The notes under the pieces were generated by a model. That model was not told the DNA's origin. It searched no databases and saw only the letters and a program-made list of their open reading frames with translations. A program made the translations under genes and the position numbers. From positions 22,506,001 to 22,570,000 of the forward strand of contig CATNEN010000001.1 of assembly GCA_950097015.1 (NCBI GenBank): 64,000 bases of DNA, written 5' to 3'. Origin of the DNA: Macrostomum hystrix (taxonomy: Eukaryota > Animalia > Platyhelminthes). Shown piece by piece: positions 2,347 to 51,114 of this stretch; position 1 is the stretch's first letter, and every line of letters begins with the position of its first letter.

Positions 2347-5300
2347 ATGACGAGTGACAGCAACTCAGCAGAAGCGCCGCGGATCAGCGTATCGCCGCCG
2401 GATCAATTCCTGCCGCAGCCGGGCCGACCGGCGAGGCCGTGGAAAGAGTGGAAGGCCCTCTTTGAGAACTACTTACTTGCGGCCGGCTACGACACTTTGC
2501 CGGAAGCGAGGAGGCGCGCGCTGTTGCTGCACTGCCTTGGCGCGGAAGGGCAGCGAGTCTTTGCGGCTGTGGCAGCAACGAAGAGGCCGAGTCCGACAGA
2601 ACTCGCGGCGACAGTCGCGATTCTGGACGAGCAGTTCGGAGCCAAAGTCAACGTGGTGGCGGAGCGCCACAAGTTTCGGCAGCGCAGTCAGCGTCCGGGT
2701 GAAAAGATTGCGGACTTCGTGGCGGCTCTGTATGCTCTGGCTGGCTCATGTGAGTTCCGCGACATGATGGAAGAAATGATCCGCGACCAGATCGTGGAGA
2801 AGGTCAGCGACAGGCGAATTCGAGAGCGCTTGCTGATCGAGGACGGCCTGACGCTGCAGAAGGCAGTGACGCTGAGCCAGCAATGGGAGACCAGCATCGC
2901 TGAGGCCAGCGCGATAGAGACGGAAGGCGCAGCCGCGGCCGGAGCACAGCTGGAAGAAGAGGTGAAGAGAGTCCGACTACAACCAGACAGGAAGAACACA
3001 GGACAAGGGCGACCAGATCGGGAGTCATGCTCCAAGTGCGGAGGCGGGCACAACAGACGAGCCCGGTGTCCAGCTGAAGGCAAGAGTTGTCATGTCTGCG
3101 GGAAGGCGAACCATTTCGGCCGGATGTGCAGGTCGCAGGGCGCCAAGGTCGCCGAGGTCATGGACGAGAGCGGCCAAGCCGTGTACATGGTGCGCGGCGC
3201 CTCCAGTCCCGACATCCGCTGCCGGCTGAAGGTGCATGGCATCTGGCTGAATCTGCTTGTAGACTCGGGAGCCAAGGTGTCCATCCTGTCAGAGAGGACC
3301 TTCAGGAAGCTCGGAAACCGGTCGCCACTCCAGCCGTCGACCAAGAAACTCATCGCGTACAACGGCAAGGCAATCGATGTCGTCGGCGAGGCGGTGCTGT
3401 CCGTCAGCTATCGCGGCCAGCTGGTGCCATTTTTCTGCTTTACCGTGGTACGGCAAGGCTCCGACATCATGGGAACGGATCTGATGCAGCACCTCAGCTT
3501 CCAGGTGGTGGACAAGGACGGCGACCTCGTGCGCACAGTCGAAAAAACGGCAGAGCTACCGGTCTGGCTGGCCGAGCGCTTCAAGCCACTGACGCAGGGA
3601 CTCGGGCGGATCCGAGGATTCGAGCACCGGCCCAGGCTGAACCCCGCCGTGCCCCCGGTGGCGCAATCGCTACGCCGCATCCCACTTAGCATCAAAGACA
3701 AAGTCCAGGCGGAGATTGACCAGCTGCTGGAGGATGACATCATCGAGGAGATCCAGGCTTCAGAGTGGATTTCGAACCTGGTGATCGTCCCGAAGCCTGA
3801 TGGCAAAATCAGGGTCTGCAATGACCTCAGGTGCCCAAACAAGGCCATAGTTCCGGATAAGCAGCCGCTGCCGACATTCGAGGAGCTGACAACGGAGTTC
3901 AAGGGCTCGACCGTGTTCACTAAGCTGGATTTAAATTCTTCGTATCTGCAGTTGGAGCTAGCAGAAGATAGGCGGGACTTAACGGCCTTCATTACGGAGA
4001 AAGGGCTGTACCGGTACAAGCGCGTATGCTATGGCCTAAACAGCGCCCCGGCGGCCTTCCAGAAAGTTCTCAGCAAGATTCTCCATGGCTGTTCCGGGAC
4101 GCTGCACTACATCGACGACATAGTGGTGCACGCTGCCAACGAGGCGGAGCACCTGCGGCGGCTCACGACAGTGCTGGACAAGCTGCTCGCCCATGGCGTC
4201 ACGCTCAACGCCTCAAAGTGCCAGTGGGCTGCAGAGACAGTGCAGTTCCTGGGCTACATCGTCTCCGCGAGAGGACTTCAGCCGATGCAGTCTAACGTTG
4301 AAGACATCGAGGCGGTGCCGGAGCCCCAGAACGCCGAGGCAGTGGCCTCATTTCTGGGAATGGTTAAATTCTATTCCAACTTTCTGCACAACCTGTCCGA
4401 CATCGCCGAGCCGCTGCTGCTGCTACTTCGCAAAGAGCAGCCCTGGAACTGGACAACAGATTGCCAAAAGGCCTTTTGGAGGCTCAAGAAGATGGTGGTG
4501 TCCCCAACATGCTTGCGATTCTTCAGTCCCGACGACAAGATCATCGTGGCCTGCGACAGCTCCGCGCACGCTCTGGGGGCCGTGCTGATGCAAGACGACA
4601 GCGCCGGGGTTCGAAGACCAGTCGCTTTCGCGTCAAGGACCCTGTCAGCGACCGAGCGCAAGTACTCCGCATCAGAGAGAGAGGCTCTCGCGTGCATCTT
4701 CGCGTGCGAGAGATGGCACTATTTCCTGTTCGGCCGGAGATTCGAGCTGCACACGGACCACCAGGCTCTGACGACGCTGCTGACGGCTCAAGGCAGCGGC
4801 CACCGGCCTCTGCGGCTTCATCGATGGGCCGACCGCCTGCTCGCGTACGACTTCCAAGTCTGCCACGTTCCTGGCAAGAAGAACATCGTGCCAGATTTTT
4901 TGTCGCGCCACGGCGCTCTCGAAGGAAAATGCCCAAGGCAAAGCGAAGAGGACTCGACCGAGCTCCAAGTGAATGCCGTACTGCTATCGGGCGCGCTGGA
5001 GATTGTCAGTCCAAGCGAACTGGCCGAGGCATCCCTGCAGGACCCGGTGATCAATGATGCGGTCACAATGACGCTCCAGGGGTGGCCTAACTCCATCAAG
5101 CAGCTGAAGCCGGAGCTGCAGCCGTTCTGGAGGATGCGGACGCAACTGGCGCTCTGGAATGACGGCAAGTGCCTGGCCAACGGCACCCGAGCAGTAATCC
5201 CCGCATCCCTGAGGGAGAAGACGCTGCAGCTGGCGCATTTCGGGCACCTCGGCGTGAGCAAAATGAAGCAGCATTGCCGGGACGCAGTCTGGTGGCCGCA

Positions 5301-6342
5301 AATCGATCAGCATATCGAGGAATTTGTGCGACATTGCGAGGCCTGCCTGCTTAGCGAGAAGAACTTTAAGCCACCCAAGACGGTCCTGACCCCTACGAAG
5401 TGGCCGACGCGTCCATGGGAGGAACTCCAGCTCGACATCTTCGGGGAGCTGCACTCTGCGCCGAACTCCTGTCGCTTCATCCTGGTGCTGTACGATTTGC
5501 ATTCAAAGTGGCCGGAGGCTGCCTGCATGTCGACTGTCACAAGCGCGGATGTCATCGACGCCCTGACAACGTGGTTTAGCCGCTGGGGCCTGCCGAAGAG
5601 CATTAAAACAGACGGAGGTCCGCAGTTCGTGTCCGGCGATTTTGAGGATTTTCTTCAGCGCTGCGGCATCCGGCACCGGCAGTCACCGCACTACCACCCC
5701 CAGGGCAACGCGGCCGTAGAGCGCTTCAACCGTTTTCTCAAGGACGGCCTAAAGACGCACCTAGAGGAGTGCTACGACTTCAAGGACGCGGTGAAGACGC
5801 TGCTGTGGTCGTACAGGGCCACCCCGCATGCACTGACTGGAGTGTCACCGGCGGAGCTCATGACAGGCCGGAAGATCAGCACCCCGTTGACAGCTCTGCA
5901 GCCAAGGACAACAGCGCGGCACAGACTGGCGGCCAGCATCAAGCGGAGGCAGCAGCGCGTTTTCGATCAGCTCAACACGACCCGGAGGCCGCCGCCCACG
6001 TTCATAGTCGGCGACTGGGTGCGCGTGAAGCGGCCGTTCGCCCGCGGCAAGCTGAGCAGCCGCCTGTCCGAGCCACGGCAGATCTCCCGGATCGCGAGCG
6101 CGACCACCGTCATCCTCAGCGATGGCTCCCGCTGGCACGTCGACAACTGCGTCCGGGTACCGCGGCCAGCCGGAGCGCTGCCGCACTGGCCAGCGCCGGC
6201 TCCCAGCGCAGCCGGGACAGCCGCGGAGGCGGCGACGGCGGCAGACCCAGCGAGACAGCAGCAGCCAGCCCAGACGGCGATCCGAGTGAGCTCAAGGCCG
6301 CGAGCGCCGCCGCAATGGTACGGTGAAATCGTGACTCACTGA
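2347..6342 (+). CDS. Gag-Pol polyprotein, 1331 aa (CA, two CCHC knuckles, protease, RT, RNase H, integrase)
   Basis: CSKCGGGH..C and CHVCGKANHFGRMC knuckles; LVDSGA protease; YIDD RT; CDSS...SEREALA...TDHQAL RNase H; H-GHLG...CEAC and LDIF / TDGGPQF / GNAAVERFN integrase; uninterrupted. Confidence 0.97.
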   Translation: MTSDSNSAEAPRISVSPPDQFLPQPGRPARPWKEWKALFENYLLAAGYDTLPEARRRALLLHCLGAEGQRVFAAVAATKRPSPTELAATVAILDEQFGAKVNVVAERHKFRQRSQRPGEKIADFVAALYALAGSCEFRDMMEEMIRDQIVEKVSDRRIRERLLIEDGLTLQKAVTLSQQWETSIAEASAIETEGAAAAGAQLEEEVKRVRLQPDRKNTGQGRPDRESCSKCGGGHNRRARCPAEGKSCHVCGKANHFGRMCRSQGAKVAEVMDESGQAVYMVRGASSPDIRCRLKVHGIWLNLLVDSGAKVSILSERTFRKLGNRSPLQPSTKKLIAYNGKAIDVVGEAVLSVSYRGQLVPFFCFTVVRQGSDIMGTDLMQHLSFQVVDKDGDLVRTVEKTAELPVWLAERFKPLTQGLGRIRGFEHRPRLNPAVPPVAQSLRRIPLSIKDKVQAEIDQLLEDDIIEEIQASEWISNLVIVPKPDGKIRVCNDLRCPNKAIVPDKQPLPTFEELTTEFKGSTVFTKLDLNSSYLQLELAEDRRDLTAFITEKGLYRYKRVCYGLNSAPAAFQKVLSKILHGCSGTLHYIDDIVVHAANEAEHLRRLTTVLDKLLAHGVTLNASKCQWAAETVQFLGYIVSARGLQPMQSNVEDIEAVPEPQNAEAVASFLGMVKFYSNFLHNLSDIAEPLLLLLRKEQPWNWTTDCQKAFWRLKKMVVSPTCLRFFSPDDKIIVACDSSAHALGAVLMQDDSAGVRRPVAFASRTLSATERKYSASEREALACIFACERWHYFLFGRRFELHTDHQALTTLLTAQGSGHRPLRLHRWADRLLAYDFQVCHVPGKKNIVPDFLSRHGALEGKCPRQSEEDSTELQVNAVLLSGALEIVSPSELAEASLQDPVINDAVTMTLQGWPNSIKQLKPELQPFWRMRTQLALWNDGKCLANGTRAVIPASLREKTLQLAHFGHLGVSKMKQHCRDAVWWPQIDQHIEEFVRHCEACLLSEKNFKPPKTVLTPTKWPTRPWEELQLDIFGELHSAPNSCRFILVLYDLHSKWPEAACMSTVTSADVIDALTTWFSRWGLPKSIKTDGGPQFVSGDFEDFLQRCGIRHRQSPHYHPQGNAAVERFNRFLKDGLKTHLEECYDFKDAVKTLLWSYRATPHALTGVSPAELMTGRKISTPLTALQPRTTARHRLAASIKRRQQRVFDQLNTTRRPPPTFIVGDWVRVKRPFARGKLSSRLSEPRQISRIASATTVILSDGSRWHVDNCVRVPRPAGALPHWPAPAPSAAGTAAEAATAADPARQQQPAQTAIRVSSRPRAPPQWYGEIVTH

Positions 6343-6528
6343 CTCGTTTTTTAGTGACGGTTATTCAGCTGTTATTAGCGATCAGCTGTTTCGATTTAAT
6401 TCTCTTTGAAGTACCTGATGCATAAAAAGATCATTTTACTCCTTCGATGCTTGGTAATGCACTTTTATTTCCTGCTCAATATTTGCATAATTATTTTCGT
6501 TGCTCTATCCTTTGAAAGGGAAGGTGAA

Positions 6529-6683
6529 TGTTGTGCAGTTGATTAATGCACGTACATAGTTCGTACATGTACACCTCTGATATCGATTGGCGCAGAATAT
6601 ATATAGTCCAATAACTGAGAGCCAACTTGGCGTGAAAGTTTCGGATACTAACTTGGCTGACTCGCTACTATTCATTTACAACA
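6529..6683 (+). repeat. 3' LTR of family A element
   Basis: Direct repeat of 2061-2215, followed by the TSD GTCGC. Confidence 0.97.
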
Positions 6684-7182
6684 GTCGCCACGATGTACAG
6701 CCTCAGCAGCAGTTCTACATAGTAATGGAATGTAGAACTAGAGCAAGATTAGAGCAAGATTTCATAATGGCGTTCGAATTCCAGCCAACTCTCAATTTTA
6801 TTGGCAGGATGTTGTGCTTCCACCGTACTCACCATTTTTAAATCCTGTGGAATCTGCGCACAGTTGTTTAAAAGCCGCGATCAAGCAGCATCTGGCGCTT
6901 CCGGCAGTCAAAGCCGAACTGGACGGTCAATCTCTACAAATTACCCTCAGTCAATGGCGAGTTGCTGTTTTAATCCGGATCGTCGAAGAATCGACTTGCA
7001 TGTTGACAGCAGCGAAGTGCGGTGGTTGGAACCGCCAGATGATGCGCTTCATTCCTAGATGCATCGCTGGAGATTCGATTTTATAAGTCATAGCTCGCAT
7101 ACCAAAGTCTCGTAGAACAGAGGACTACTTAGGTTAGGAAGTCAACGAGAACTGTATATTATGACATTATTCCTTATAATTC

Positions 7183-7260
7183 TGATGTGCTGTAGTCTGC
7201 TGAGCAGCCTCCAGGCAATCTGTGGAGTCAGCGCTGCCCTGGTGCTGTGGGGGGCATGTG
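7183..7260 (+). repeat. Diverged 5' end of a family-B-related LTR
   Basis: TGATGTGCTGTAGTCTGCTGAGCAGCCTCCAGGCAATCTGTG matches the LTR starts at 23491 and 56973. Confidence 0.75.
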
Positions 7261-8344
7261 AGTAGGAAGTCTGCGGTTACCCGTGCGGTTAAGTGCAGGT
7301 AAGTGTTGTATAGGAATAGTTAGGTTAGGTAGTGGTGGTGAGGATAGAATATAATTGGTTGGCTTTTCGATAGCAGACTGCCGTATGGTCAGCGATATGA
7401 AATCGAATGTTTAGAAAGAAGCATAGGCTATAATTGAGAATAAAAGCGTGTTGGGCATAAGATCAACAATTGCTGGTCTAGAGTATAGCTGAAACGATAA
7501 TACAGCAAGAGTTGCTTTAAATTGACAATTTCACTTGTCAAGTAGGCAAAAATTAAGCCAAGCAATTCATGCTATTTATTGATTCACTTATGCTCAAAAT
7601 TACCCCTACTGCCAGTTTATATTGCTGCAATGTTGTCAATGTTACTATTATGTTACCTTTCAATGTATATATTGTTCAAATGTTGCGGCAATGTTGAAAC
7701 GGCAATTTGTTTTCTTTTTCTTTTCATCAATTCCCTACTTATAGTAGCACTAAGAAAACATTAAAGAATGGAGCTATTTTGCAGGGTTAGCTCAAATTAT
7801 GGTGAAAGTTTTGCTTGGTCACATATATTATAATATTATGACTATACCCATTTAAAAAAATAACCGCATTCTCAATAATTAGAACTGCAATTTATGTTTT
7901 TTGTTAAAATTTTTCAATTTATTTTGATCATGCAAAAATATTCGTGCATTTTATAACATAAAATATAGATTTTACTCTGTGGGTGTTCGCGGCATGTTTG
8001 TTTGTGGTTGTTTGTATCTAGGCATAGATTAGATTAGCCATATAAAAATTCTAAATGGGTAATTCCATATTAGACTTAGAGTCCTATTTCCAAAAAATGA
8101 AAATTTGTACAAAAAGTTATAGACAATCAGCAAAAAATTGAAATTGATATGTCCCTAAGTCTTTTGTCATGCTGTTATCCCAACTCATCTATTATGCATT
8201 TGTAGTCAATTTTATTATCTTCTATAAATCTTAGTCATTTTAGTGTTTAATAGATATTTTTTTAAATCAAATGAAATTCCATGATTTGTTGTTACATTAG
8301 AACATGGAAGTTTAGCTCCTTATAGGCCTACCTTCACTTTAAGA

Positions 8345-8370
8345 ATATATATATATATATATATATATAT
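8345..8370. repeat. (AT)n microsatellite
   Basis: 13 AT units. Confidence 0.9.
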
Positions 8371-9956
8371 CTGATATTTGAATATTGCGACTTTACTATA
8401 TATAGGCCTATAGCATCAACTTTCAATATGCACATTGCATGGCAGAATTTACACTATGAGATAGGAAGCATCTTTCATTATAAAAAATTAAAATTTGAGG
8501 TTAACCCTGTCCTGTCTATTTTCCATGGGTTTGAGTAAATTTTTGTCTTTTTGATAGATTTCAATACCTTTGCGATTTCAACACAAGTGCTATCTTCTTT
8601 CTATCATTAAAATAGTAACACTGTCCACCATGCCCACAAGTGTGGCATAATAAATTATGTTATTATGTTAATAGTTAATATTTGTTATAGATGAAATCAA
8701 ATATAACAATGAATTTTAAAATAAGTAGAAAATAAGACAGATTATTATAAACCTTGGTGTACTGTAAACAAAAACGAGTCGATCGATGGTTAGCTTGAAC
8801 AAACCGACAAAAAAACACTCACATCTCGTGAGTGGCCTTCTGTGCTCATTTATTATAGATTTCACAAGCAGCAGGCTCAAGCGGAGGGGGTGGACGATGC
8901 CACTGCACGTCAAACAGGTTAGGGGTGAGAAAGTTAAGTACGCATGCGAGCTAAATGGAATATTTGATGTACATTAAAATGAGACCATGACAAAATAAAT
9001 GAAAGAACCCCTGCCTTCAATTCACTTGGAATAAATAATCCTGCTACAAAATATGAATTTTAACAACTGTTATCTACAATTGTTTGCAAAATGTTAGACA
9101 TATTAGCCTTTTTATGATTTTTACCACTATTTTCTGATGTTGTCTTTTTAATGAAATCAGTCATTACATTTGTATATTCTACAGTTTTTGCAAGATAAAG
9201 GCTTCTATTAAAAGATTGTAAACTACAAATTTTCTGCAAAAGACAATTTTTTAAATTTAGTAAGCTCTCAAAGCCACTGGCTCTTTATATCAATATGAAA
9301 CTTTCGTAGTAATAGGTGTTAATGTTAGAATGTTAGTCATTGTGCCTTTTCAAAATAGAATAGTTGTGCAATGGCCAATAGTTAGCCATTGTCATTTATT
9401 ATTGTTGATATTGTCTATATTATAATTATTTTTATATGTAGATGTTTAAAATTTAATGTACTATTTCACTAAGTTTATTGCCCTAGATTAGATCCTGAGA
9501 TACAAAAGAAGTATATTTATATTTTTCAGTTGAAATCTCATGGATGATAAGAGTTACAGCAAGCGTACCTTTCAAATGAAGGCCCTAGGCAATATAAAGA
9601 GATCCAAGCATTATGAGCATCAGCTCATTTGGAGAGATCTATAAGTGTTTCTCATCAACTAGAAGATGCCATTGCTGAACAACAAGAAGCCGAACACTTG
9701 GTTCAAGCCCATGAAGTTGAACACCATGAAGCCCAGTACCATGCCCACGCCCAACTACATAAATCTGAGCAAAATGGAGTCTCCAATGACTGCATGGAAC
9801 AAGAAGACAAAGATTTGTTGACAGAAGTTGCAAATGTGAATGATCTACCTGGTAAGTTGCTGCAGTCTCTTAAACTGTAACATTACTGACCTAATGTTAA
9901 AATGAATGCATTGATTTATTGTAGAACCTTCATCATTTTTATTTTAGTTCCTAGTA

Positions 9957-9985
9957 CTAGCAAGTTTTGCCCCCCTTCGGGGAGC
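9957..9985 (-). terminator. Helitron 3' terminus: hairpin plus CTAG
   Basis: Minus strand reads GCTCCCC-GAA-GGGGGGC (7-bp stem with one G-T pair), 8 nt, then CTAG|T. This fits the Helitron hairpin + CTRR + T-target rule. Confidence 0.75.
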
Positions 9986-11466
9986 CATATTCAGTACTCA
10001 AAAGTGAAAATACTACGATAATGTTCTCTATTTAAAATAGGCTTTTTTGGAGATCGTTAATAACGCATTTTAGGTAAAACAAAACTATCAACTTTTTACG
10101 GTTTCTTAGTTTAGAGCCTTTTATGTCAACGTTTTTTGATAAAATGATCTTACCAATTTCATACATAAAATTGTTCAGAGCGCTTTTTTAGTTGTTACTG
10201 AAAATGAAATGAAATTTTATTTCAAGAAATTCCTACTATCCGAGAAATGTACTTGCTTTATTCCGATTTTCTTGTTGCTTGTATTGCTCATGTGTACTAC
10301 AGTTTTATACACATCCAGACAAATTTTTTACTTTCTTCATTTGTAAGTGAATTTCTAAGCCCTGCTCATCGTACTAACTGCGACTGCAATGTTCCGAACA
10401 ATAAGTAGCTCAGCATTGCAACTATTGCCCTTGAATGAGGCCCCTATTATAATAATAAATGACTTAAAGAGTCAGTTCAATGCAGCTATCTCATTGTGAA
10501 TGGACTTTGCAAAAGCAACTGGAGCTACATCCTTCGACCTTTGGTTTGACGCTTTTAATAAAGCTAACACTGGCTATATATGGCTATGATATATGATATA
10601 TATTATCATACTAAATTTCCCGACCCCCTCTCTTTTCTAGTCACACTCCTCAGCAGACTTCTCTTTTCTTATTTGCCTCATTCACATTGTCAAATCTTAT
10701 TTTGAATCTTACATATTACATTTTACATAAAAGTCTATTTCAAATTAGATCCCATTTTGATAGTTCATAATTGATAGCTAATATCAATGGCTAATTAAAT
10801 ATCAATGGATCAATTTCTAATCTCCTTTCTTTTTCTTAATAATTCCAGTTCTCATCAGATCCTATTTCTCATCTGACCTCTTTTCTTAGTAATCCATTAT
10901 GTATCATTCTTCATTACAAATGCATGCCTGACAATTTGTCTTTTAAAATAGAATAAGGGAATTACCAGGAGTGCAGATTCATGAATCATGGGACTGGTCT
11001 TTGTAGGCTAAAACATTTATTTGTATCTCTTCAATTACAAAACACATTTAAAACAACAAAACAACAACAATTAAGTCAGCATTCGGCAAAATTATTATTA
11101 TACAAATACATATCATTATCATTATGACGTTATAAGAAAACAAACTCAAAATGTAAAGAATTCAATGCAATAAAAAAACTGGATTGCGCCTAAAAATATT
11201 TACACAAACAGTAAACATGATAAACTTGCAGAAGGCTCCGCCAACAAGACAGTATCATTGCACAGTTCATTGCATTTGACTGCAAGAATAATGGTGTCAA
11301 TCCTACTGCTTGTTGGCTTGCTTTACTCTGCACTGCTGGTCAGAGGCATTCACTGGGGCAAGTTAAGTTCACATTCTCAACGTCACACAAAAAGCTTTAC
11401 TGCTTGGGAAGCATTCACAGCCGGGGTCGGCATTAAGCAAGTTCATTCACTCTTGCCACAGCACAG

Positions 11467-11761
11467 CAACATGCTTAGTCGGCCGTCACAAGATTTAAGG
11501 TCTGCGATTAGGCTGCTTCAGAACATGGCTGCGTACCCTCCATTTTACCGTGGAAGAACCTCTGAATCGTGATAAGCAGCGAACACGTATTTCAACCACG
11601 TCTCTCAAGGCCCATTGATATGCAGTCAACCTGCTCCAAAAGGAACAGGATTTACGCTGATGTGACTCATTGGGCCAATGGGCAGAGCTCAACTATCATG
11701 CACCATTTACACATCAGGCGGCTCAACTTGTGATGGCGACTCACTGCAACATCTCACAGAC
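11467..11761. repeat. 295-bp direct repeat, copy 1 (copy 2 at 16953-17247)
   Basis: CAACATGCTTAGTCGGCC...CATCTCACAGAC, near-identical between copies; the ORF track gives near-identical 65-aa translations for both. Confidence 0.95.
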
Positions 11762-11837
11762 ACAATTACACAGCAACTGTCTCACCCATGCTACACTCAA
11801 TCTGAGTAGTTTAGGTTGAAATCCTTGTCCGAACCAA

Positions 11838-13205
11838 TTACTCGTCCATAGACATTCGCGAGTCGCCGTAATGCTCAGCCACATCAGCTCTAGGCGTATA
11901 AGTGAGGACCTGCTGGCTCCTGTATTGCCCGTCTCGGGAGAATGTAATCTGCGAAATGAAATGGGGGATAAAATCTCTTTAATTAGGAAGTCTTAATATA
12001 ATACTGTTGCATACGTGTGCGTGCCCCATTTGCATCCTTTTAGACAATGGAAAATGCATAATATAGGGGTGTGGTCAGCAGCATTATTCAGTCCCTCAGT
12101 TAAAGGGTAGAGTCGCGAAGCAGAAAATTCGCGTTAGTTCCGTCAAATAAACTCACCTCCTTGTCTCCGAAACGCAGTCGGATTCGTTGTACACCGTTGA
12201 ATTGGTTATACATTCGCTCGGGGTATTGCATCACCATTTCGTCATCTCGTGACGCCTTGTTCTCCTGTTGAACACTTTGGATGATGCGCACCGCCTCGAA
12301 GCACTGTTGGCTAGTCACAGCCTGTCTGTACCAGTCGGAAGCATCAGAGACTTCGGCAGAGTCTTCTGGCCAATGCTGCTCTTCCGCTTTGGAACAACCG
12401 AGACTAACCGCTTCGGCGAACTCCTGGACTTGCGCACCTCGAATGGCCAGAACGTCGCCCACGGACCAGTTAGTCACCTTGCTGGCAGAGGTAGCCCAGA
12501 AGGTACACGATACTTGGCACCCAGACTGATCCACGAGCGTCACTTTCGCTAGGTTGACCAGCTTTCCGGCACCGGTTTTCACTTCCCGCGGTTTCTCGAC
12601 TGCAGAGATTGTTCCACGAACGTCGACATTCCTGCGTTGTATGGAAATGGAAAACAAATGACTAAAAGCGACTGCACGAAGGCTGCCAAGCTTGTAGTAT
12701 CTATAAACTGCAGTCTAATAAGCCACAAAGATCCCAGAGTAAAACGACTATAATAACCTGTCAACAATATTACTCACGTGTTAATCTGGCTTCCGGAAAT
12801 CTCATTAATTTTCCTGTACATAGCTGCACGTCGAGAAACCGTCTCGTTTGTCTTCACAATAACACCAGATTTGTCAACAGATACGGTCATCTCGTATTGG
12901 TTACCCGTACGGTTGTACGCCGAATTTGCCTTCTTCACCCAACCTCCGGTTATGCGCACGGCCTCGTCGGCTTGGCAGACGTCCAGAAGTGGCCTCAGAT
13001 CTGTGCCAAACACGCTCACTCGAATGTTCCCCGTGTCATCACTTAAGACGAAGGAGAACACTTGGCCCGGTCCGTCCTTGCCGACAAAGTCCTTGATGGT
13101 CGTCAGCATCGTCACCAGGCCGACGACAGCAACCTCCATCAGGCCCGGAAGCAGAGCAGATACGCACATTTTGCTCTTCTTGGCTTGTCCGGCAGGCGAC
13201 TCCAT
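11838..13205 (-). CDS. RPA70-like ssDNA-binding protein with two OB folds, 3 exons (13205-12778, 12631-12157, 11948-11838), ~337 aa
   Basis: OB1 GQVFSFVLSDDTGNIRVSVFG...VKKANSAYNRTGNQYEMT; OB2 VDVRGTISAVEKPREVKT...VTLVDQSGCQVSCTFWA...VLAIRGAQVQEF. GTGAGT donors and CAG acceptors join all three exons in frame (428+475+111 = 1014 nt). Confidence 0.85.
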
Positions 13206-13810
13206 CGTTTGTTTGCTATTAAGTAAACAGAAAAGTCTAGAAAATGACAGAACAAAAATTTTGCACTTAGATAGGGCTGTTTAGTTTGATATAAAAGTCG
13301 CTGTCGCTTATATTATCTCTATATTCATTTCAAAATAACAACCCACCGTGCACTTAAAAGTGCGATGACTCACGCCACTTTCAATTGGGTGTGGCAACCT
13401 CCTCTGGCTTCCAGACCCCTCAAATCCACCATCCCCAATAACATAAGTGAGGAGTGGGCCCAAAAGCTGCTGACCAATCAGAAACAGCTTTGATAATAAC
13501 CATGGTACAATTCCAAACCATAATGAGCTGATAAAGCTAAGCCAGTCAAAATGGCAGAACACCACCCACTGTATACACTAATCTCAAATCACACAGCATT
13601 AAGCTGTCCTACCTCAACTACAACGTAACGTCTAGACGATACAAAAAAACTTCTAGACGCAAACTGGCTGAGACAACTTTGGACTGCCTAAAAGCTCTAA
13701 GCCAATCAGAATGGACCAAGCTAATCTGCAGGGTTTTGAGCACTGATTGAAATCCAGCCTTTACGGTGGAGTATATTTATATGACGTACAACACTGAATG
13801 GCCCACAACC

Positions 13811-14238
13811 ATGAAAATCAACCACAACTACTATGCCGGCGGCGGCGGCGGCGGCGGACGTCGCGGTCGAAGAGGCCACCGCAGAGGACCCAGTAAGTAA
13901 CATTGTGTCTGCCTATAATTCTATACATCTGCCTTACTTGGTCATTTATTTTCACTAAGTCCTTCCGTCAGGCATTCAGTTAGACAATAAACTTGGTACA
14001 ATTCTAACACTCATTGCAACATTCTTAACACTCAATTCATACAGTCTCGTGTTACCTCTGCGGTGGGCCCCACAGCATAGCACGCTGCCCCGCCGTCGCC
14101 GAGCACCGGCGGCAACAGCAAGAAGAAGAGAAGAAAGCAGACGAAGAAAAACGGCTGCAGGAACGGCTCCAAAAATTTCGAATCCAGCAGCAGAAGCAGA
14201 GGGAGCAAGAGCAGCAGCAGGAGCAGCAGCAGCAGTAG
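13811..14238 (+). CDS. Small RGG / CCHC-like zinc knuckle / Q-E-rich protein, 2 exons (13811-13892, 14045-14238), ~91 aa; tail may be shortened by a nonsense change
   Basis: MKINHNYYAGGGGGGGRRGRRGHRRGP, phase-1 intron GTAAGT...ACAG, then ISCYLCGGPHSIARCPAVAEHRRQQQEEEKK...QQQQ*. TATA-like TATATTTATA at ~13773. A paralogue with the same intron lies at 54670-55133. Confidence 0.75.
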
Positions 14239-16952
14239 CAGCTGCAGCAGCAATGACAACAGCACCAAAAAAAACTGCGACGTTAATTCGTATCATTAAT
14301 TCATAGCATATTATTTCATATCATATTAATTCATAACATAATATTTCATGAAATAATAATTCATATCATATTAATTCATATCATATTATTATTATGATAT
14401 GATAAATAAATTGTAACCACTCTGTTCTTCTTTGCTTACATTTACGATTACTAAAGACTCATTTTTTCGCTTGGATTAACACACTATTATAATAGTGTGT
14501 AAACTTCGTTGCAAACTTTCATGCCATTTAAAATACACTGCATCGAACAGAGAAGGCGAATTTCAAGAATTGAGGATACTCGGTATTGTCACTAACTGTC
14601 ATTTTGTCAGCTAGCGATAATCAGTCTTAAAGACTTACAGATCTGCTGATCTGAAATTTCATACATTTGCAGAACTCAGAGGTACTCATTTTCATCAAAT
14701 TCAAATTTGAATTATATCCTATTTTTAATCAGATCCCATTCTGCTTGTAGATATATCAAACAATATCTACGGCAATAAATTGTTGTCCTATGCTGTTCCA
14801 GTTTAAATCCAATCTCAGAAGCTCAGTTCTGCCTTTTCTCCTTTGATTTTATATTCTATAGTTTCATTGCTCAATTTTCACATTATTTCCCCTTCTCCTT
14901 TCTAGTCACTCCTCAGCAAACTTCTCTTTTCTCACATGCCTCATTCGCATTGTCAAATCCCACTTTAAATCAAATCCCTTTTTGAATACGAGTACATTTC
15001 AAATCAGATCACATCTTGATAGTTTGCAATGTGTAATAGCTAATATCAATGGCTGATTCAACCAGTTTGATTCAAATAAGTTTCGCAGCTATGCCTAAAT
15101 CAGCTGTGCCTAAATCAGCTTCGCAGCTGTGTCTAAATCAGTTTGTATGACAGATGACAGATCTGCATGACAGTATGACAGATTTGTATGACAGTTAGTT
15201 GAAAGATACATTGACAGGCTGCTAGACTGCTAGACAGATTGATAAACACGCAGATAAATACATAAAAGAAACTTATATGTCTACACTCTCCACTGTGTGG
15301 ACTTATTATAATAACACATTTACATCCTGATGTCTGTTACTCTACTGTCAGTAGAAATATTCACACGTCAGAATTTTACTGAATTTTACGGTATTGGCTT
15401 TACTGAAACATGTGCCTCTTTTTCACAATTTATTTACATAAGGCTGTTAGTTAAGGCTGTTATCATTAATCATAGTAAATATTTCACAAAGCATAGCATA
15501 GTCAAACAAAATTGCACAACCATAATGCCGTTATTAGTCAATCATAATGCAGTTATTGGTCAATCATGTCTTCGCCATGCCGTGGCCCGCAGAGCTGAAA
15601 TAGCGAAATAAATAAACAATAGACACAAAACATTTTAGTTTTAAAACAAAACACCATCTCATCAGAAAGTGCAGGCATCAATTCTGTTATTAAAAAGGGT
15701 TTGCTGGATTGGCAGTGTCTTTCGCAAGCGGAACAGCATTATTGCATGATTCATTAGAATCTTTTATGTCAATCCTACTGTCCACAGCAAAATTATTCTG
15801 CCCTGCGTCACAGAGCGCATTCACTGGGGTATGCAATAAATAAATAAATAGCAGCGAAATGTCCATTTCAAACATCTCTCTCTCGAGGCCCATTACTATG
15901 CAGCCAGCCTGCTATCTGCAATGACATCAAAGAATTCAACTGCTTGATTACTGAGGGAATCTGTGTCCCAGCTAGACACCTAAAACATTGGTCATCAAAA
16001 GCACATCGCTTATTCCACACATTTTACAGAAGTATTCGCTTATACACCCATAGTTAGCCCAGTAAAAGGTTGTGGAATTCATATAGCATGCACTTTCCCA
16101 GTTCTTGGAGCCAGCTGCCAGTTCTATCATACTGACTAATTTGCTCATATTTAATCCTGTCAGCAACAGCCATACAATTCGGACAGCGCAGTTCTCATGA
16201 ATGAGTCTGATGTGCCATTCAAATCATGCACAACCGGCATACCCAACTTCCAACTTAAAAAGGTGACCTGAAAAGTTCGGGGCATCCAACAGGTTCAGCA
16301 TTTCTGATGATTCGATAATAATCACAAATAATCATCAATTATCTATGCTAGTATGATTCCCACAGGGCAGCTTCACTTCGAGAAAGTTCACTTTCTCTGC
16401 TTGAACATTTTGGCAATAGAGTGCGAAAGCGATGAGAAGTATCTTCTCATGGGAAGCGAAAGTGGTGAGCAGAATTGATTTCTCGACTCTGGCGCCCATG
16501 AAGACTTCTTAGTGTTTCATGGGGATTTCCCTTAGTTATATGCGCTATTATTCAATCGACCCATGGCTTTTCAGCAGGATAATCCTGCTTTGTTGGACAA
16601 TCCACTCTGGCATTTTTAATATACTCATCGTCAAACGTGGCCGGTGATTTCGGCCAGCTGTGTGTGGACAGACAGGTGCGAATGTTCATTCTTAATCGCA
16701 AATCAATCGGTACTCTTAAACAGGCATTCTTCTGCAGCTGACTCTAAAAATGGATTACTTGCTTTTGTATGCATTCACAGCATTTTGCAAGGCTTATAAA
16801 TGTAAAATATAATACTCCTGTCAAATATGCAGACTTAAGAATATACCTTTTCTGACTTTTGTTTCACGCCCTACTGTGACACAAATTCCGCTACTCCTAC
16901 TATATAATATTCACTTTCTTTGATGTCACTGCAGCACAGCCACAACACAGCT

Positions 16953-17247
16953 CAACATGCTTAGTCGGCCATCACAAGATTTAAGGTCTGCGATTAGGCT
17001 GCTTCAGACCATGGCTGCATACCCTCCATTTTATCGTGGAAGAACCTCTGAATCGTGATAAGCAGCGAACACGTATTTCAACCACGTCTCTCAAGGCCCA
17101 TTGATATGCAGTCAACCTGCTCCAAAAGGAACAGGATTTACGCTGATGTGACTCATTGGGCCAATGGGCAGAGCTCAACTATCATGCACCATTTACACAT
17201 CAGGCGGCTCAACTTGTGATGGCGACTCACTGCAACATCTCACAGAC
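16953..17247. repeat. 295-bp direct repeat, copy 2
   Basis: Near-identical to 11467-11761. Confidence 0.95.
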
Positions 17248-17309
17248 TCACAAGTCACGGGAACTCAATTGAAGTTCGATAAACTCACGAATGTCCAGTG
17301 AACAATCTT

Positions 17310-18200
17310 CTAGTCTCCAGTGAGCACCTCTGGGTAGACAACGTTCCTGGTCGTGGTTTCAGACAACCGGACCCGGACATTTGCTACATTTTCGCTCGAG
17401 ACAGCGCAGTATATAACTGGCCGTGCGAAAAGCATCCAACCGCCAGGTCGATGCCGACTGTCTCCAGGCTCTGCCCCTGAGACTTGTGAATCGTCAGGCA
17501 AAAGCTGGGCTTCACCGGGAACTGCAGCCGCTTGAAGCAGACTGGCAGGTCAGCATTGTTGGGCTGTAGGGGAATCCGCGGCAGCAGGATTTCATCTCCA
17601 GTGAACTGGCCGGCAGCGACTTTGCAGCGCAGCACATTCTCGCCCAGCTCCAGGATGATCAGCCGGGTGCCGTTGCACAGCCGTGGCGGATTCAGAATCC
17701 GCAGCAGAACCAGCGGCATGCCCACCTTGAGCTTCAGAAGGTGGGCAGGGAAATTCGGTGCATCCAGCTGATTCAGCAGCTCCGGAGGAAAGTGCGTGGC
17801 CGCATCCTCGTCAGCCACGCTGTCCACCGAGCGATACTCGCGCAGTTGGCCTGGGAACATGGCCAGGCACTCGTTGTTGATCGCGTCAACCGCATCGTTG
17901 TAGGGCGCCAGGATGGCTCGGCTGGCAAAGTAGCTATCGCGCTCCTGACGCCTCGAACGCAGGGTACACGAACAGGATCAGCTCGGATAGCGGCGCCTCC
18001 GCCGAAATGACAATCTCGGCAGGAAGGCGGACGGTGTCATCCGACTGATCAGCCAACCCAGAGCCGATCTGTGTGGATTGGGCAGGAAAATGCAAGAGAA
18101 TCGCAGGCTACACAGGTGATCTACTCCTACAAGCAGCAATAGCAAAACTTACCTGCATGAGCAGCTGCATATAGCGATGGTACAGCTCAGCATCAGCACA
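17310..18200 (-). pseudogene. Helitron PIF1-family helicase, C-terminal half, frameshifted
   Basis: RAILAPYNDAVDAIN; LKLKVGMPLVLLRILNPPRLCNGTRLII; FKRLQFPVKPSFCLTIHKSQGQSL; FSHGQLYTALSRA; after a frameshift TTRNVVYPEVL. The N-terminal Walker A region is absent. Confidence 0.93.
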
Positions 18201-18204
18201 ACTC

Positions 18205-18740
18205 TGCAGCAGCAGCAGGCGGGCAAACTCGTCAGTGCGGCACAGCTTGAAGAAGGCCGTCAGTGTCGAGTCTCGTGGCACCTTTGCTCTGGCGCCCGCG
18301 GTCTGCTCGTTGAAGTACACAAGCTGCTCTTCCGTCTTGTGCACGCAAAGTCGGATGACCGCCGGAAACCTGTTGTGCACCTGGGCAAAGGTGAGGATAT
18401 TTTTTGAGCATCAGAGTGACCGCCAAGACTAAATGCAGTGCTAAAATCACAGCTACATCACAGCAGACCAGAGCAATTACCTCAAAGGCCAGGATAGTGT
18501 TGACAGCTTCCATCGGACCAATGTAGCGTGCAGACAGGTACTCCGAGATTTCGTCCCGTGACTTCGCCTGCCTCTCAGGAGGAGCACTCGGCTGAGATTC
18601 AGCAGCTTCTGCGGCGGCGGCGACTTTGAAAACGGCCATGTCGCCATTCTTCATCAAGTACTTGATCACGTACTTCACAGACTTGACAGTGGCGCAAACT
18701 TCAACGTTCAAATGGCACGCGAACTGCTCGCACCGGCGGG
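18205..18740 (-). pseudogene. Helitron Rep (HUH/Y2) domain, C-terminal remnant
   Basis: CHLNVEVCATVKSVKYVIKYLMKNGD (YxxKY catalytic motif); DEISEYLSARYIGPMEA; PAVIRLCVH; STLTAFFKLC; GT-AG intron at ~18480-18382. Confidence 0.9.
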
Positions 18741-19015
18741 ACACAATGCCTGTGTGGTATGAGGCAGACCAGGCCTACGGGCTAAGGTCTGCGATGCCTC
18801 ACACCTGCAGTCGTTTTTTGAGCAGGCTTGGCAGGAATGGAGCCCTGTGCCTCCGGGTGCAGGAATCCTCTCCACGTTGTCCCGTCAGCTGACCCATGGG
18901 TACACGTCCCGCGAGTGTTCAAGGCTGACCCTAGGGCAGCCGGACAGAATGGGCAACAGCGCTGGATGACCCATCCAGGGCCTCCGGCCTAACTGGGTAC
19001 CTCTAGCCCCGGCTG

Positions 19016-19360
19016 GAGGGAAAGGTGTCACCCTTTGACCTTAACAGGGTATGCGGCGAGTCCGCAGCGTTTCGTGCACCTGTGCGTGATCAGGTACCTC
19101 TGGCTACGGCTCCGAGGGAAAGGTGTCACCCTTTGACCTTAACAGGGTATGCGGCGAGTCCGCAGCGTTTCGTGCACCTGTGCGTGATCAGGTACCTCTG
19201 GCTACGGCTCCGAGGGAAAGGTGTCACCCTTTGACCTTAACAGGGTATGCGGCCAGTCCGCAGCGTTCGTGCACCTGTGCGTGATCAGGTACCTCTGGCT
19301 ACGGCTCTGAGGGAAAGGTGTCACCCTTTGACCTTAACAGGGTATGCCGCCAGTCCGCAG
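19016..19360 (+). repeat. 98-bp tandem repeat, ~3.5 copies, in the LINE 5' UTR
   Basis: Unit starting GAGGGAAAGGTGTCACCCTTTGACC at 19016, 19114, 19212 and 19309. Confidence 0.95.
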
Positions 19361-19591
19361 GCCTCGGCGCTGGCCAAATAGCGCCCTCTAATGTCCCAGT
19401 GTTGACCGTGCTGATGGACGCTTGACCAGGGAGTAGTCTGGCCTCCTACGGTTCCTCCCGGTGGTCCTGGCATCCCACCCCGGGTTGTAACTTGTCTTTT
19501 TTGGCTGCCCCCGCTCAGCTTTGGGATCGCGGCTGAGCGGGTTATTCCTGCCTGTGTCTACAGGAAGCCCCTCTCCTCATTGCAGCTTCTA

Positions 19592-21139
19592 ATGGCTTCC
19601 AGCCTTCCAACTGCTCCGGCCGAGGACACCATGGTGCCCGAGGCCATACACGCTGCGGCGCCCGGGCTAGCTGGCCCCGCGACCGCCACAAATGCCGCGC
19701 TGCCCAACTCGCGCGATGACCGGGGCGCTAAGCGCTCCACAACCTCTGGAGCGGCAAAGCGTCGTAGGCGCTTAATGGCCCACGGCAAGCCGGCTCCATC
19801 GACCGAGGACCGGGCCCAGGCCAGAGGGGCCGAAGGGGCTCTGCCTAGGGCGGGGGCTGGGGCGGGGGGCCTTGCGCCTCCTGCCCAGGCTCCTGCACGG
19901 GGCGGAGCCCACGACGCCCCGAGGCCAGGGTCGCGGGCCAAGGAGGTCCCGGCGCCCATCCGGACGGCGGCTCGGCCTGAAGGAGAAGCGGAGGCAGAGG
20001 GCCCTGTGCCCACCGCCGACGCTGATCCCGAGGGTGGGGTCGCCACCGGACAGGGCCCGGGACCACATGCCACCTACGCCGCCATCGCACGTAGGCAACC
20101 TGCCGTTGTCATCACCGGCAGAGACGGAAAAAGGCTGAGCAGCGAACAGCTCAGCAACATTTGCCGCAACATAGATGCTATGCTGTGGCAACTTCAACTG
20201 AAGGGCGAGCCCCTGGCGGTCGGCGCAAGCGCTACCAGGGAATCGTGCTTCGTCGTCTGGCCCGGCGACGCGGAATCAGGGCGGCGGCTCCTTGAGTTGC
20301 TGCCCACGCAGAGCTGGGCGGCTGGCCTCGACTTCCTCCGGGAGAACGAGCCACCAAAGACCAAGCGACACCGCATTTTCGTCCCGGCGAAAAGTGTCGT
20401 CACCAGCGCTGAGGACCTCCGCATGGGCCTCATCGCGATGAACCGGGAGCTGCAGACAGCGGGCATGATCGTGCACCGCACGATCCTGCGCCCCGATGGC
20501 ACCGGGTTCACCGCCATTCTGGGCCTGTCCGAGCAATGGACACGCCGATACCCAGATGGCGCCAACATCTGCATTGGTCTGTGGAAGACCAAAATCTTCG
20601 CCTTCGAGGCAGATAAAACTCGAGGTCAGACCGGGCCCACCACCGTACCGGCCACTGAAGGGTCCTCGGACCCCGAGGTTGGGACTGGGGGCAGGGCCCA
20701 GTCGTCTCGCCAAAAAAGGCCAGAGCGTGCCATCGCTGGCAGCTCTGAGCGTCGCCCCGCGCGCATCACAAAGCGCCGGGGCCTTCTCCAGCGGGCCTCC
20801 GAGGTGGTGCGAACCGCCAGGATGGCCCAGCTGCGCGCTGAGATGCGCGGTGGCCCACCGGGGCAGGCGCCGCAACCAAGGGCTACGGGGGAGGCCTCTA
20901 AGGTGCCCAGCTCCATCGAGCAGGGCCCTTCGAGCGCCCCTCCCACGGCCCAGGGTGCGGTGTCGGCACCGGTTGAGGGTGACTCTGGGCCTGGGCTCGG
21001 GGCCGGGGGTGGGGACTGGGCGGCTGACCCCGTCGAGTTCCCGCCTCTGGCTCGGGGCCGGGGCACGGAGGAGCCCATGGCTACCGACATCGACCCGGAG
21101 GAGGAGGACCGCCTTCTGGCTGAGTCCCCCTCCAAGTAG
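19592..21139 (+). CDS. LINE ORF1 protein (DUF4780-like core), ~515 aa
   Basis: Basic SGAAKRRRR motif and TYAAIA, then the core VVITGRDGKRLSSEQ...RIFVPAK...LIAMNRELQT...ICIGLWK flanked by low-complexity tails; lies directly upstream of the ORF2 start. Confidence 0.75.
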   Translation: MASSLPTAPAEDTMVPEAIHAAAPGLAGPATATNAALPNSRDDRGAKRSTTSGAAKRRRRLMAHGKPAPSTEDRAQARGAEGALPRAGAGAGGLAPPAQAPARGGAHDAPRPGSRAKEVPAPIRTAARPEGEAEAEGPVPTADADPEGGVATGQGPGPHATYAAIARRQPAVVITGRDGKRLSSEQLSNICRNIDAMLWQLQLKGEPLAVGASATRESCFVVWPGDAESGRRLLELLPTQSWAAGLDFLRENEPPKTKRHRIFVPAKSVVTSAEDLRMGLIAMNRELQTAGMIVHRTILRPDGTGFTAILGLSEQWTRRYPDGANICIGLWKTKIFAFEADKTRGQTGPTTVPATEGSSDPEVGTGGRAQSSRQKRPERAIAGSSERRPARITKRRGLLQRASEVVRTARMAQLRAEMRGGPPGQAPQPRATGEASKVPSSIEQGPSSAPPTAQGAVSAPVEGDSGPGLGAGGGDWAADPVEFPPLARGRGTEEPMATDIDPEEEDRLLAESPSK

Positions 21140-21236
21140 ACCTCTGTCTGCATGATGATCCCCGGAATATCATGCCTGCAAGTTAACACCCAGCACTGCG
21201 TGGCAGCATCAGTCAATCTGTACCTGTGGTCAGAGG

Positions 21237-21750
21237 TCAGAACTTGACTTTCTTGGCCCTCTTGGCAGGAGTTCTGCTTGCTGCCAAGCTTGGAAACTCT
21301 GCATCTGAAAGGGCTTGCAAAGGCTCTCGAAGTCTCAGTGACTCGTAATGTTCATGGCGCAAGAGCACCCGCACAATGGCATTAGGAGGATGCAGATTAG
21401 CCCTAAAATACTGCATAACATTACCATTGGCCTGGTAAATGACCAGGTCCACATTAAAACAGCGGCTCAATAACGAAGCAACTTCATCTGAAACATGAAT
21501 TCCTGTTTGAAAAGAGCAATTCACAATGTCATCAGCACTCTCAGGTGCAATGAGGCCATCTGCAACCAACTGAGGCATGAGTTCTGCAACACGGCAAGAC
21601 AAATCCTGCCGCAAGGAGGCTGCGTCAGTTTCCAGCGGGGTTCCACGCAGCTGATCACACACGGAATAAAAGAAGCAATTGCCATCACCCACAATGGGGA
21701 TTACCTGCAACTGATCAAAGGGTACAATAGCTTCCGTACCTTGCTGCTGG
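21237..21750 (-). CDS. OTU-like cysteine protease exon of the Helitron polyprotein
   Basis: IVGDGNCFFYSVCDQL (catalytic Cys motif) and HEHYESL (catalytic His motif); same strand as, and upstream of, Rep/helicase. Confidence 0.85.
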
Positions 21751-21909
21751 GTGTCCGACCTAAGGGGCAATGAGTGAACGTAAGCACAGCTCCCTTAATT
21801 GGCTTTTTTTTAAAGACAATTAATTTTAAAAAATTATCCCATTCAAGGCAATTCCGATAAAAAAACAAAAATAAAGACTTGTTTAAAACTTTGCTATAAA
21901 ACTCACCTA

Positions 21910-22316
21910 GAAACCACGGCTCCACGGCGACGAATCCGATCGGCTTCCAGTCGGGCAGCTCGCTCTGCCTCAGTCTCAGCCTCTCTGCGCTGAGCGTCCC
22001 GCTGCCGCTGTTCTTCCAGTCGGGCAGCCCACTCTGCCTCAGTCTCAGCCTCTCTGCGCTGAGCGTCCCGCTGCCGATGTTCTTCCAGTCGGGCAGCCCA
22101 CTCTGCCTCAGTCTCAGCATGTCTGCGCTGAGCGTCCCGCTGCCGCTGTTCTTCCCGTCGGGCAGCCCGCTCTGCCTCAGTCTCAGCCTCTCTGCGCTGA
22201 GCGTCCCGCTGCCGCTGTTCTTCCAGTCGGGCATCCCGCTCTGCCTCGGATTCTGCCTGTCGCCGTCGCTTAGCATCGCGGCTCTTCTTTAAACTGCTAG
22301 CGCCGCGTCGAACCAT
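21910..22316 (-). CDS. First exon of the Helitron polyprotein: 23-aa STPR-like repeats (69-bp tandem repeat, ~5 copies)
   Basis: Unit EAETEAERAARLEEQRQRDAQRR; ATG at 22316; GTGAGT donor at ~21907. Confidence 0.75.
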
Positions 22317-22699
22317 GATTGAGAAATGAGAAGTGAAATGAAATAGTTGAGAAAGAATGATAAGGTTTGAAAGGTAAAAGTTTGTGATTTGGATGTCTGA
22401 AGAATCAGATAAGGTGCCCTTATAGCCAAACTAAATGCAGGCTATTTATCATCCAGTGGGCTGAATCGGCCCTTATCTAAAGACGCAGGGTAAAAACTGA
22501 AAAATCGATAAAGAAGAAAGGGGTCTCAATCTTAAAAACCTATGATTTCGGGTGTGGGCTCTCCAGGCCTGTGTGTGCACATTCCAGGGCAGAGGGCTAA
22601 CAATGTACACTGGTCTGCGCCAGCCTGAAAATGAAGCGGGTTAGGGTACTAATGTACATGCTAATACTATACCCAGCAGAGAACCAATGTCGCTGTTGT

Positions 22700-22955
22700 A
22701 TAAAACTGTTGGACACATTTAGAAAACAGACACAGATATTATTAAGACACATTTAAAAAACTGCAAAACACATAAAAAACAGGTAAACACATTAAAAAAC
22801 GGTTAAACACATTTCGACAACTGTTAACACATTTAGAAAACTGTTGAACACATAAAACTGGTAAACACGTTTAGAAAACTGTTAAACACATTTAGAATAC
22901 TGTTAAACACATTTAGAATACTGGTAAACACATTTAAAATACTGTTAAACACATA
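22700..22955. repeat. 21-bp minisatellite (ACTGTTAAACACATTTAGAAT-like)
   Basis: About 11 imperfect copies. Confidence 0.9.
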
Positions 22956-23409
22956 CATTGCTTTAAGAAATTTAGACAAGGTTTGATGATTTATATGTTG
23001 TAGTAAGAAAGGAGTAGATGTCTCGCTTGTATTGAGCAGTATATTGCAGTTTATTTGAAATGAAGTCTGCTATGCACATTTTACCTATTCAAATCAAACA
23101 CACACACACACACGGGTGAGAAAAGCTATGATGTAATCTATTTATAAATTCGCACTGACTGTCTCGCCAGTGGGGCTGACATAGCTATGTACATTTCTTA
23201 TACGTGTACTCACTTTTAACGAAACTGGCCCTGATGCAATCATTAAAATTGGCAGCGGAACGCACATTGACAAAACTGGCTCTGATGTAATGCATTAAAA
23301 ATCCTATCTAAAACAGTTTTTCGAATATTTAATCCCCTTAGCAATAAAGTTAAGCTTAATAGAAATACGTGCATATGTGTCCCCATATTTGGCATCTTTT
23401 GGTGAAGAA

Positions 23410-24144: not shown

Positions 24145-24207
24145 TTGGTGGCAAAGCGGTGTGATTCGAGTTAGCCTTTTTACTCATTCACTGCGGAAAC
24201 GGACGCC

Positions 24208-51113: not shown

Positions 51114-51114
51114 T

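Follow-up and report, generated by a model that had tools for sequence, protein, structure and literature searches.

Helitron movement is understood mainly through one reconstructed transposase, and, to our knowledge, the roles of Helitron accessory genes are largely untested. Here we describe a 64-kb stretch of the Macrostomum hystrix genome (C1:22506001-22570000, hereafter the window), in which a Helitron copy on the minus strand carries two such genes, an RPA70-like gene reduced to two OB folds (mini-RPA) and a small spliced gene for a zinc-knuckle protein (KN). The genome of 220 Mb contains 67 matches to Helitron_like_N and is also rich in Gypsy elements.

RPA-like genes located 3' of the RepHel gene are well known in the Helitrons of plants, cnidarians and fish (PMC11417382, PMC6431247, PMC4683698). 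The element described here resembles the canonical Helitrons (HLE1; PMC11417382, PMC6431247, PMC4683698) in its CTAG 3' end, its subterminal GC hairpin and the host T that follows, in the position of the RPA-like gene 3' of RepHel on the same strand, and in the occurrence of non-autonomous copies with common termini. It differs from them in a third conserved gene, KN, located between RepHel and RPA, and in the reduction of RPA to two OB folds. The main text of a 2024 survey of Helitron-like elements names 20 extra domains, none of which is a knuckle or CCHC (PMC11417382), and a full-text literature search for a Helitron with a zinc knuckle or CCHC returned no such partner. An earlier interpretation of the window, made from its letters (hereafter the sequence-only reading), knew of no such partner in described Helitrons, and we likewise found no published description.

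The best joint explanation of our results, to which we assign a probability of about 0.55, is that the intact mini-RPA and KN are selected accessory genes of the Helitron, and that KN binds single-stranded nucleic acid and works with mini-RPA on the transposition intermediate.

Structure of the KN and mini-RPA genes

KN lies on the plus strand at positions 13811-14238. Exon 1 (13811-13892) encodes MKINHNYY and a Gly/Arg-rich arm and ends in phase 1. The intron (13893-14044; 152 nt, GTAAGT...CAG) splits an Ile codon as A|TC with the frame preserved, and exon 2 (14045-14238) encodes the CX2CX3HX4C-P knuckle, within I-S-CYLCGGPHSIARCP, and a long Q/E/K/R-rich helical tail up to the stop. The junction 13892/14045 in phase 1 is exactly that proposed by the sequence-only reading, and the knuckle motif that it had pointed out, CYLCGGPHSIARC, is present in exon 2. 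The gene models and splices were read from genomic DNA and copy comparison alone; each exon of a spliced model was searched separately, and full-length KN was examined via naturally intronless paralogues.

The KN product is about 90-130 residues long. Its start follows the consensus MK(I/F)(N/T)xN(Y/F)(Y/F) across copies, and both the start and the arm are kept in all lineages. This conserved start corresponds to the ATG at 13811; an in-frame upstream ATG at 13781, suggested by the list of open reading frames, occurs in only a few copies. The Gly/Arg composition of the arm is conserved, but its exact motif is not: the window copy contains RRGRRGHRRG, with three RG and no RGG, and di-RGG arms of the GRGGRGGG type are found in three other copies (L010, L011 and L013). 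The tail is Q-rich in every copy and varies in length and sequence around a loosely kept RLxExLxxLRLQ stretch, and it is frameshifted or interrupted in many copies. The polyQ tail of the sequence-only reading is not borne out in the window copy, where the tail is a charged Q/E/K/R helix with at most four consecutive Q and no long uninterrupted glutamine run; other copies reach more than 30 Q. AlphaFold2 applied to the exon-2 product with 14 homologous rows (pLDDT 91) predicted the knuckle at residues 1-14 and a single long helix at residues 15-62, and Foldseek of this model against PDB returned no match. A word-index protein search with the KN N-terminus found nothing.

The mini-RPA gene is located on the minus strand at 11838-13205. 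Exon 1 (13205-12778) encodes the first OB fold, of the DBD-A type (Pfam PF01336, 4e-7), and matches residues 182-284 of human RPA70, which correspond to DBD-A (PDB search, E 1.7e-6). Exon 2 (12631-12157) encodes the second OB fold, of the DBD-B type (Pfam REPA_OB_2, PF16900, 8e-11), together with the C-terminal region, and matches residues 339-388 of human RPA70, which correspond to DBD-B (PDB search). Exon 3 (11948-11838) adds 36 codons and the stop. Both introns have GT-AG ends and the frame is maintained over both junctions. The splice sites 12778/12631 and 12157/11948 of the sequence-only reading are exact; its claim of an intact three-exon RPA70-like gene holds on these junctions and on the Pfam and PDB matches.

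The tandem OB folds for binding single-stranded DNA (ssDNA), DBD-A and DBD-B, are thus those of RPA70 (1JMC / 8RK2), whereas the N-terminal DBD-F, the zinc-containing DBD-C of the heterotrimer core and the trimerisation helix have no counterpart, and the C-terminal region is unrelated. Since no Pfam or PDB match was found outside the two OB folds of the ~336-residue product, the gene encodes a two-OB mini-RPA rather than a full RPA70. A word-index protein search with RPA exon 2 returned only two unspliced Logan fragments.

The two genes diverge from a spacer of 605 bp (13206-13810), which contains two CCAATCAGAA boxes (13474-13483 and 13702-13711) and, at ~13773-13783, a TATA-like run. This 10-mer occurs three times in the window against an expectation of 0.12, and all three occurrences are in the two RPA-KN spacers. 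Across lineages the spacer measures 600-860 bp, with several CCAAT boxes in each lineage and a TATA box 5' of KN. In the lineage with both genes on the same strand, a CCAATCAGAA/CCAAT box is found upstream of each gene separately. The co-regulation proposed by the sequence-only reading fits the shared box upstream of both genes, and a common regulator, for example an NF-Y-type factor acting on the CCAATCAGAA boxes, may be involved. Each gene would be driven by its own CCAAT/TATA promoter in the spacer.

Conservation of KN and its association with RPA and RepHel

A genome-wide search with exon 2 detected KN at 22 places, and a profile of its N-terminal half (A1) detected 44 distinct loci. Sequence-level comparisons of KN rest on 27 fetched loci, which cover some of the divergent lineages. 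In several lineages the intron is located at the identical position and phase and measures 86-177 nt, and in four other lineages (copies L004/L006, L008/L026 and L021/L022/L027) KN is intronless, with the frame unbroken from the MK start via the arm to the knuckle. Since intron-bearing and intronless copies encode the same protein, the splice is supported independently of RNA data, and we regard this comparison as the strongest splice evidence obtainable short of such data.

The knuckle spacing X3 is found at all 44 loci with C, C, H and C invariant, and the consensus of the fetched loci is [S/A/G]C[Y/F][L/F]C[G/A]G[P/G]Hxx[A/I/R]RC, although the RPA genes beside these knuckles have only 40-100% identity to the window RPA. 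The ratio of nonsynonymous to synonymous divergence (dN/dS) in the 20-codon knuckle core is 0.06-0.35, and between lineages dS has reached saturation. Variation is found at all 15 third codon positions, as against 7/15 for the first and second positions, and both synonymous codons are in use for every one of the four zinc ligands. For RPA exon 2, dN/dS is 0.13-0.18 at dS ~1.1 between lineages of this genome. Across copies, both genes are under purifying selection. For RPA exon 1 the cross-lineage estimate was discarded, since an indel had put the alignment out of register (pN 0.71).

These data bear on two trivial explanations of KN. Since KN is short and low in complexity, has no Pfam match and has no counterpart from this species in public protein libraries, it might be a chance open reading frame in G/C- and CAG-rich DNA. 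This explanation, which retains almost no probability, is refuted by the occurrence of the motif at 44 loci and by three signs of a coding gene, namely the way variation falls on codon positions, the use of both synonymous codons for the ligands and an intron phase that is kept across lineages. Alternatively, KN might be a functionless fragment that was passively captured, for example from a Gag nucleocapsid or eIF3g, with copies that are alike because they are young. Helitrons often capture gene fragments (PMC11417382), dN/dS within KN subfamilies, calculated from very few changes, is close to neutral (0.2-0.9), and the tail is broken in many copies. However, neither the ligands nor the GPH/RCP residues vary between lineages whose silent sites are saturated; conservation extends to the start motif, the arm and the intron phase, and intron loss preserved the frame. 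Passive capture is already largely refuted by the conservation and selection data, and we consider it highly improbable. KN is very probably a real, selected Helitron accessory gene. The sequence-only reading was right that a two-exon gene had been missed among the open reading frames, as indicated by the 44 loci, the exact junction, the intronless copies and the purifying selection.

KN and RPA travel together, as had been claimed: RPA exon 2 is located within 6 kb of KN at 32/44 loci, and at least five more loci have RPA exon-1 fragments, which brings the total beside RPA to at least 37. The head-to-head arrangement of the sequence-only reading stands for 26 of these 32 pairs but is not fixed; about five pairs are on the same strand, and the divergent lineage L021/L022/L027 has RepHel, KN and RPA in this order on a single strand. 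Gene order is conserved and head-to-head orientation is not. A Rep domain is found within 20 kb of 22/44 KN loci. Conversely, 16/48 RPA exon-2 matches have no KN within 6 kb, mainly in lineages with 31-36% identity to the window RPA, so KN characterizes only part of the RPA-bearing Helitrons.

Other copies contain all three genes. On C5, one 3' hairpin (1139) and one 5' end (17429) of the joined loci L008 and L009 enclose Rep, KN and RPA within 16.3 kb. In the joined loci L006 and L007, the order is a multi-exon RepHel gene (Helitron_like_N and PIF1), a 31-bp satellite, a 1.2-kb repeat, then antisense KN and finally RPA. The satellites and repeats in the latter copy are located at 1810-3517 and 6697-11760.

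The KN tail is also a site of retrotransposon insertion. The open reading frame of a non-LTR retrotransposon, or long interspersed nuclear element (LINE), lies within the CAG/polyQ tail of KN in L027 (4881-9800; G000:C1:2792480-2797399), L010 (~4155-2632, minus strand) and L012 (~5474-6655, plus strand). In these three independent copies the insertion is in-frame with KN, with open frames of 1639, 518 and 404 residues, and the inserted frames were read by eye as zinc-finger, endonuclease, reverse-transcriptase and RNase H parts. The L027 and L012 inserts have a 2A-like D(V/L)E(V/L)NPGP motif ahead of the LINE protein. This arrangement suggests a CAG-repeat-targeting LINE that could be translated from the host open reading frame and freed by a 2A skip.

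The Helitron copy enclosing both genes

Both genes lie within a non-autonomous Helitron copy of ~13.5 kb on the minus strand (9957-23486; 5' end good to about +/-5 nt). Its 3' terminus (9957-9985) reads, on the plus strand, CTAG at 9957-9960 and the hairpin GCCCCCC-TTCG-GGGGAGC at 9969-9985; on the element strand, the order at this boundary is GC hairpin, 12 nt, CTAG and host T. The left boundary 9956/9957 is common to L001, L003, L015, L019 and L020, and the right boundary at ~23486 is common to L015, L018 and L019, with unrelated flanks in each case. The CTAG and GC-rich hairpin are also found at the 3' end of at least 10 other copies, and the host T follows CTAG in the window copy, L001, L003, L015 and L019. 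At the 5' end, the sequence is TCTAATATAC in L015, L019 and L020 but TATATAC in L018 and the window copy. Since the 5' flank of the window copy is a Gypsy element, its original target is unreadable.

The mapped boundaries, CTAG and hairpin confirm that both genes are located between Helitron termini, as the sequence-only reading had assumed. They also bear on the alternative that RPA and KN form a cluster of host genes whose proximity to Helitrons is incidental. In favor of this alternative, no Rep domain is found near the window copy or its closest relatives (C5:5047221, C1:21305668 and C1:14661263). However, the pair is enclosed on one side by a Helitron 3' CTAG with its hairpin and on the other by a 5' end found in several copies with unrelated flanks, some of them in head-to-tail arrays; RepHel remnants are found inside the same copy, and the autonomous 16.3-kb copy encloses all three genes. 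The host-cluster explanation, which we consider extremely improbable, is refuted by this boundary mapping.

The RepHel remnants are on the minus strand. Those of the C-terminal side (17313-18711) comprise the helicase C-terminus (17313-18101; Pif1_2B, UvrD_C_2) and a pre-helicase piece (18177-18711), and those of the N-terminal exons (21285-22276) contain 69-bp repeats. No PF14214 (Rep) match was found in the window copy, which lacks the Rep domain and the greater part of the helicase; the Rep (HUH, Helitron_like_N) fused to a PIF1 helicase is present in the sister copy L007. Since the Rep domain is missing, the window copy is non-autonomous and would need a transposase from elsewhere. In place of Rep and the helicase core, there is a GC-rich stretch of 2.5 kb (18711-21285), which contains 98-bp tandem repeats (18996-19360) and an open frame of 519 residues (19580-21139, plus strand) with no Pfam match.

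A direct repeat located just 3' of the RPA stop (11455-11764) has 97% identity to a second located just 3' of the helicase remnant (16939-17250). The sequence that follows RPA is thus repeated after the helicase gene, over 0.3 kb in the window and over 1.2 kb in autonomous copies, where it is accompanied by 31-bp satellite arrays (0.5 and 3.2 kb). From this layout, the RPA-KN module looks like an insertion or duplication flanked by the element's own 3' region. We also considered RepHel and RPA-KN as two separate tandem elements, since the repeat follows both, and rejected this arrangement because a search for an internal terminus motif inside the window copy found none between them. In L015, L018, L019 and L020, head-to-tail copies abut at CTAG|TC (for example at ~9008-9025 in L019); these are tandem arrays of the kind expected when rolling-circle termination fails.

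The window also contains a second copy, a fragment of 2.1 kb (53487-55579) with a 92% match to L013. Its KN belongs to another lineage and is complete on the plus strand (54670-55133), with exon 1 at 54670-54742, an 89-nt intron and exon 2 at 54832-55133. The RPA side is reduced to part of exon 1 (53455-53846, minus strand), which has 57% identity to the first copy and DNA homology that stops at 53487. The sequence-only reading had placed the same pair at 53.5-55.1 kb; this is true of KN, whereas RPA is represented by a partial exon. The left side of the fragment is truncated at a long terminal repeat (LTR) that ends at 53435. This LTR belongs to an element at 42476-53435 that adjoins and truncates the fragment and whose 2.3-kb LTRs (42476-44796 and 51115-53435) are 99.8% identical. 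Two Gypsy copies in the window, 96.5% identical to each other, are located at 23489-30191, directly abutting the Helitron 5' end, and at 56971-63695.

Relatives of the knuckle and possible roles of KN

The sequence-only reading was correct in recognizing a zinc knuckle, CX2CX3HX4C, but its X3 spacing is of the eIF3g type and not retroviral. The retroviral-type zf-CCHC (PF00098) has the spacing CX2CX4HX4C, and no Pfam match to KN was obtained even at E<=1. The best solved match to the KN knuckle is the eIF3g zinc knuckle 2MJC (SCRICKGDHWTTRCP; E 0.015), which has the same X3 spacing and trailing Pro, and the host eIF3g knuckle reads CRICRGPHFTTRCP, again with the same spacing. KN contains the C-X2-C-X3-H-X4-C-P pattern and four ligands of the eIF3g type (PF12353), for which zinc binding is predicted, and has the G, H, R, C and P positions in common with it; the GPH residues are also found in host eIF3g. 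On the other hand, PF12353 and RRM scored on KN gave no match, and the eIF3i-binding N-terminal region and the RRM of eIF3g are absent from KN, which instead adds the RG-rich arm and the Q-rich helix and is multicopy in a transposon.

A KN profile searched against 1.84 billion proteins gave 27 matches at E<=1e-3, most of them CxxCxGPHxxxxCP knuckles; two were typed by Pfam as Retrotrans_gag or Gag-protease proteins. KN resembles these Ty3/gypsy-type Gag nucleocapsids, its top profile matches, in the basic residues around a single knuckle, as in nucleic-acid chaperones, but has no Gag capsid domain, and the similarity is limited to ~20 residues. An origin of KN from the Gags of the window's Gypsy elements was rejected, since their knuckles have the canonical X4 spacing.

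Among the profile matches, only the Macrostomum lignano protein PAA85584.1 (BOX15_Mlig001744g2; paralogues g1 and g5) has the whole KN architecture, with an MKVT start, an Arg-rich arm, an I-E-CYFCGENHRVSRC knuckle and a Q-rich tail, and it is also multicopy. The hhalign probability between KN and this protein is 96.6%. The identity is, however, only ~41% over 32 residues, and the M. lignano gene is known here from the protein alone; a word-index protein search with it returned only itself.

These similarities suggest two kinds of role. In the explanation that we favor, the basic arm and knuckle of KN would bind single-stranded nucleic acid in the manner of a retroelement nucleocapsid, and KN and mini-RPA would act on the single-stranded rolling-circle intermediate, for example in coating, annealing or the folding of the terminal hairpin. 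Through its long helix, KN might self-associate or contact a partner. Taken by itself, a specific role of KN on ssDNA is a tentative proposal that we rate at somewhat less than an even chance. A stricter version, in which KN and mini-RPA form a two-subunit complex for ssDNA handling, with the KN knuckle and helix replacing in trans the DBD-C and trimerisation core lost by mini-RPA, is improbable.

The main rival to the ssDNA role is that KN is real and selected but acts on RNA or on the host, in transcript translation or mRNA handling, nuclear import, control of CCAAT promoters or anti-silencing. In favor of this rival, eIF3g, that of the host included, has the same knuckle spacing and GPH...RCP residues as KN; RG-rich arms and Q-rich helices are generally common among RNA-binding and regulatory proteins, and KN and RPA are independently swappable. 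Against this role, the position of KN between RepHel and RPA is maintained over deep lineages, and no other part of eIF3g is present in KN. We consider an RNA or host role rather unlikely.

Several observations weigh against a joint action of KN and mini-RPA as Helitron accessory proteins on the intermediate. We know of no eIF3g-type knuckle that binds ssDNA. Several RPA-bearing Helitron lineages have no detectable KN, which is hence not essential to Helitrons generally. Pfam searches with the KN exons and the natural intronless full-length KN returned no match, and no KN protein from this species was found in a library of 15 billion proteins. Finally, L006 and L008 (G000:C3:7218147-7220352 and C5:5170878-5173044) have an identical RPA exon 2 (dS 0) but strongly different KN, with a core dS of ~0.5 and differing N-termini. 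Since the RPA exon is identical and KN is not, the two genes can be exchanged independently, which weakens the case for tight co-adaptation; the Helitrons of this genome seem to be mosaic, with lineages trading the KN module among themselves.

That selection has maintained a small protein, invisible to domain scans, beside the element's ssDNA binder over deep divergence suggests that it is a helper, and KN is a concrete candidate for inclusion in Helitron transposition assays. KN also illustrates that standard annotation misses short spliced genes in transposons, and that such genes can be validated independently of RNA data by comparing intron-bearing with intronless copies. If the stricter two-subunit version is true, this clade of Helitrons would possess a minimal machine of its own, 'RPA plus nucleocapsid', for the rolling-circle intermediate.

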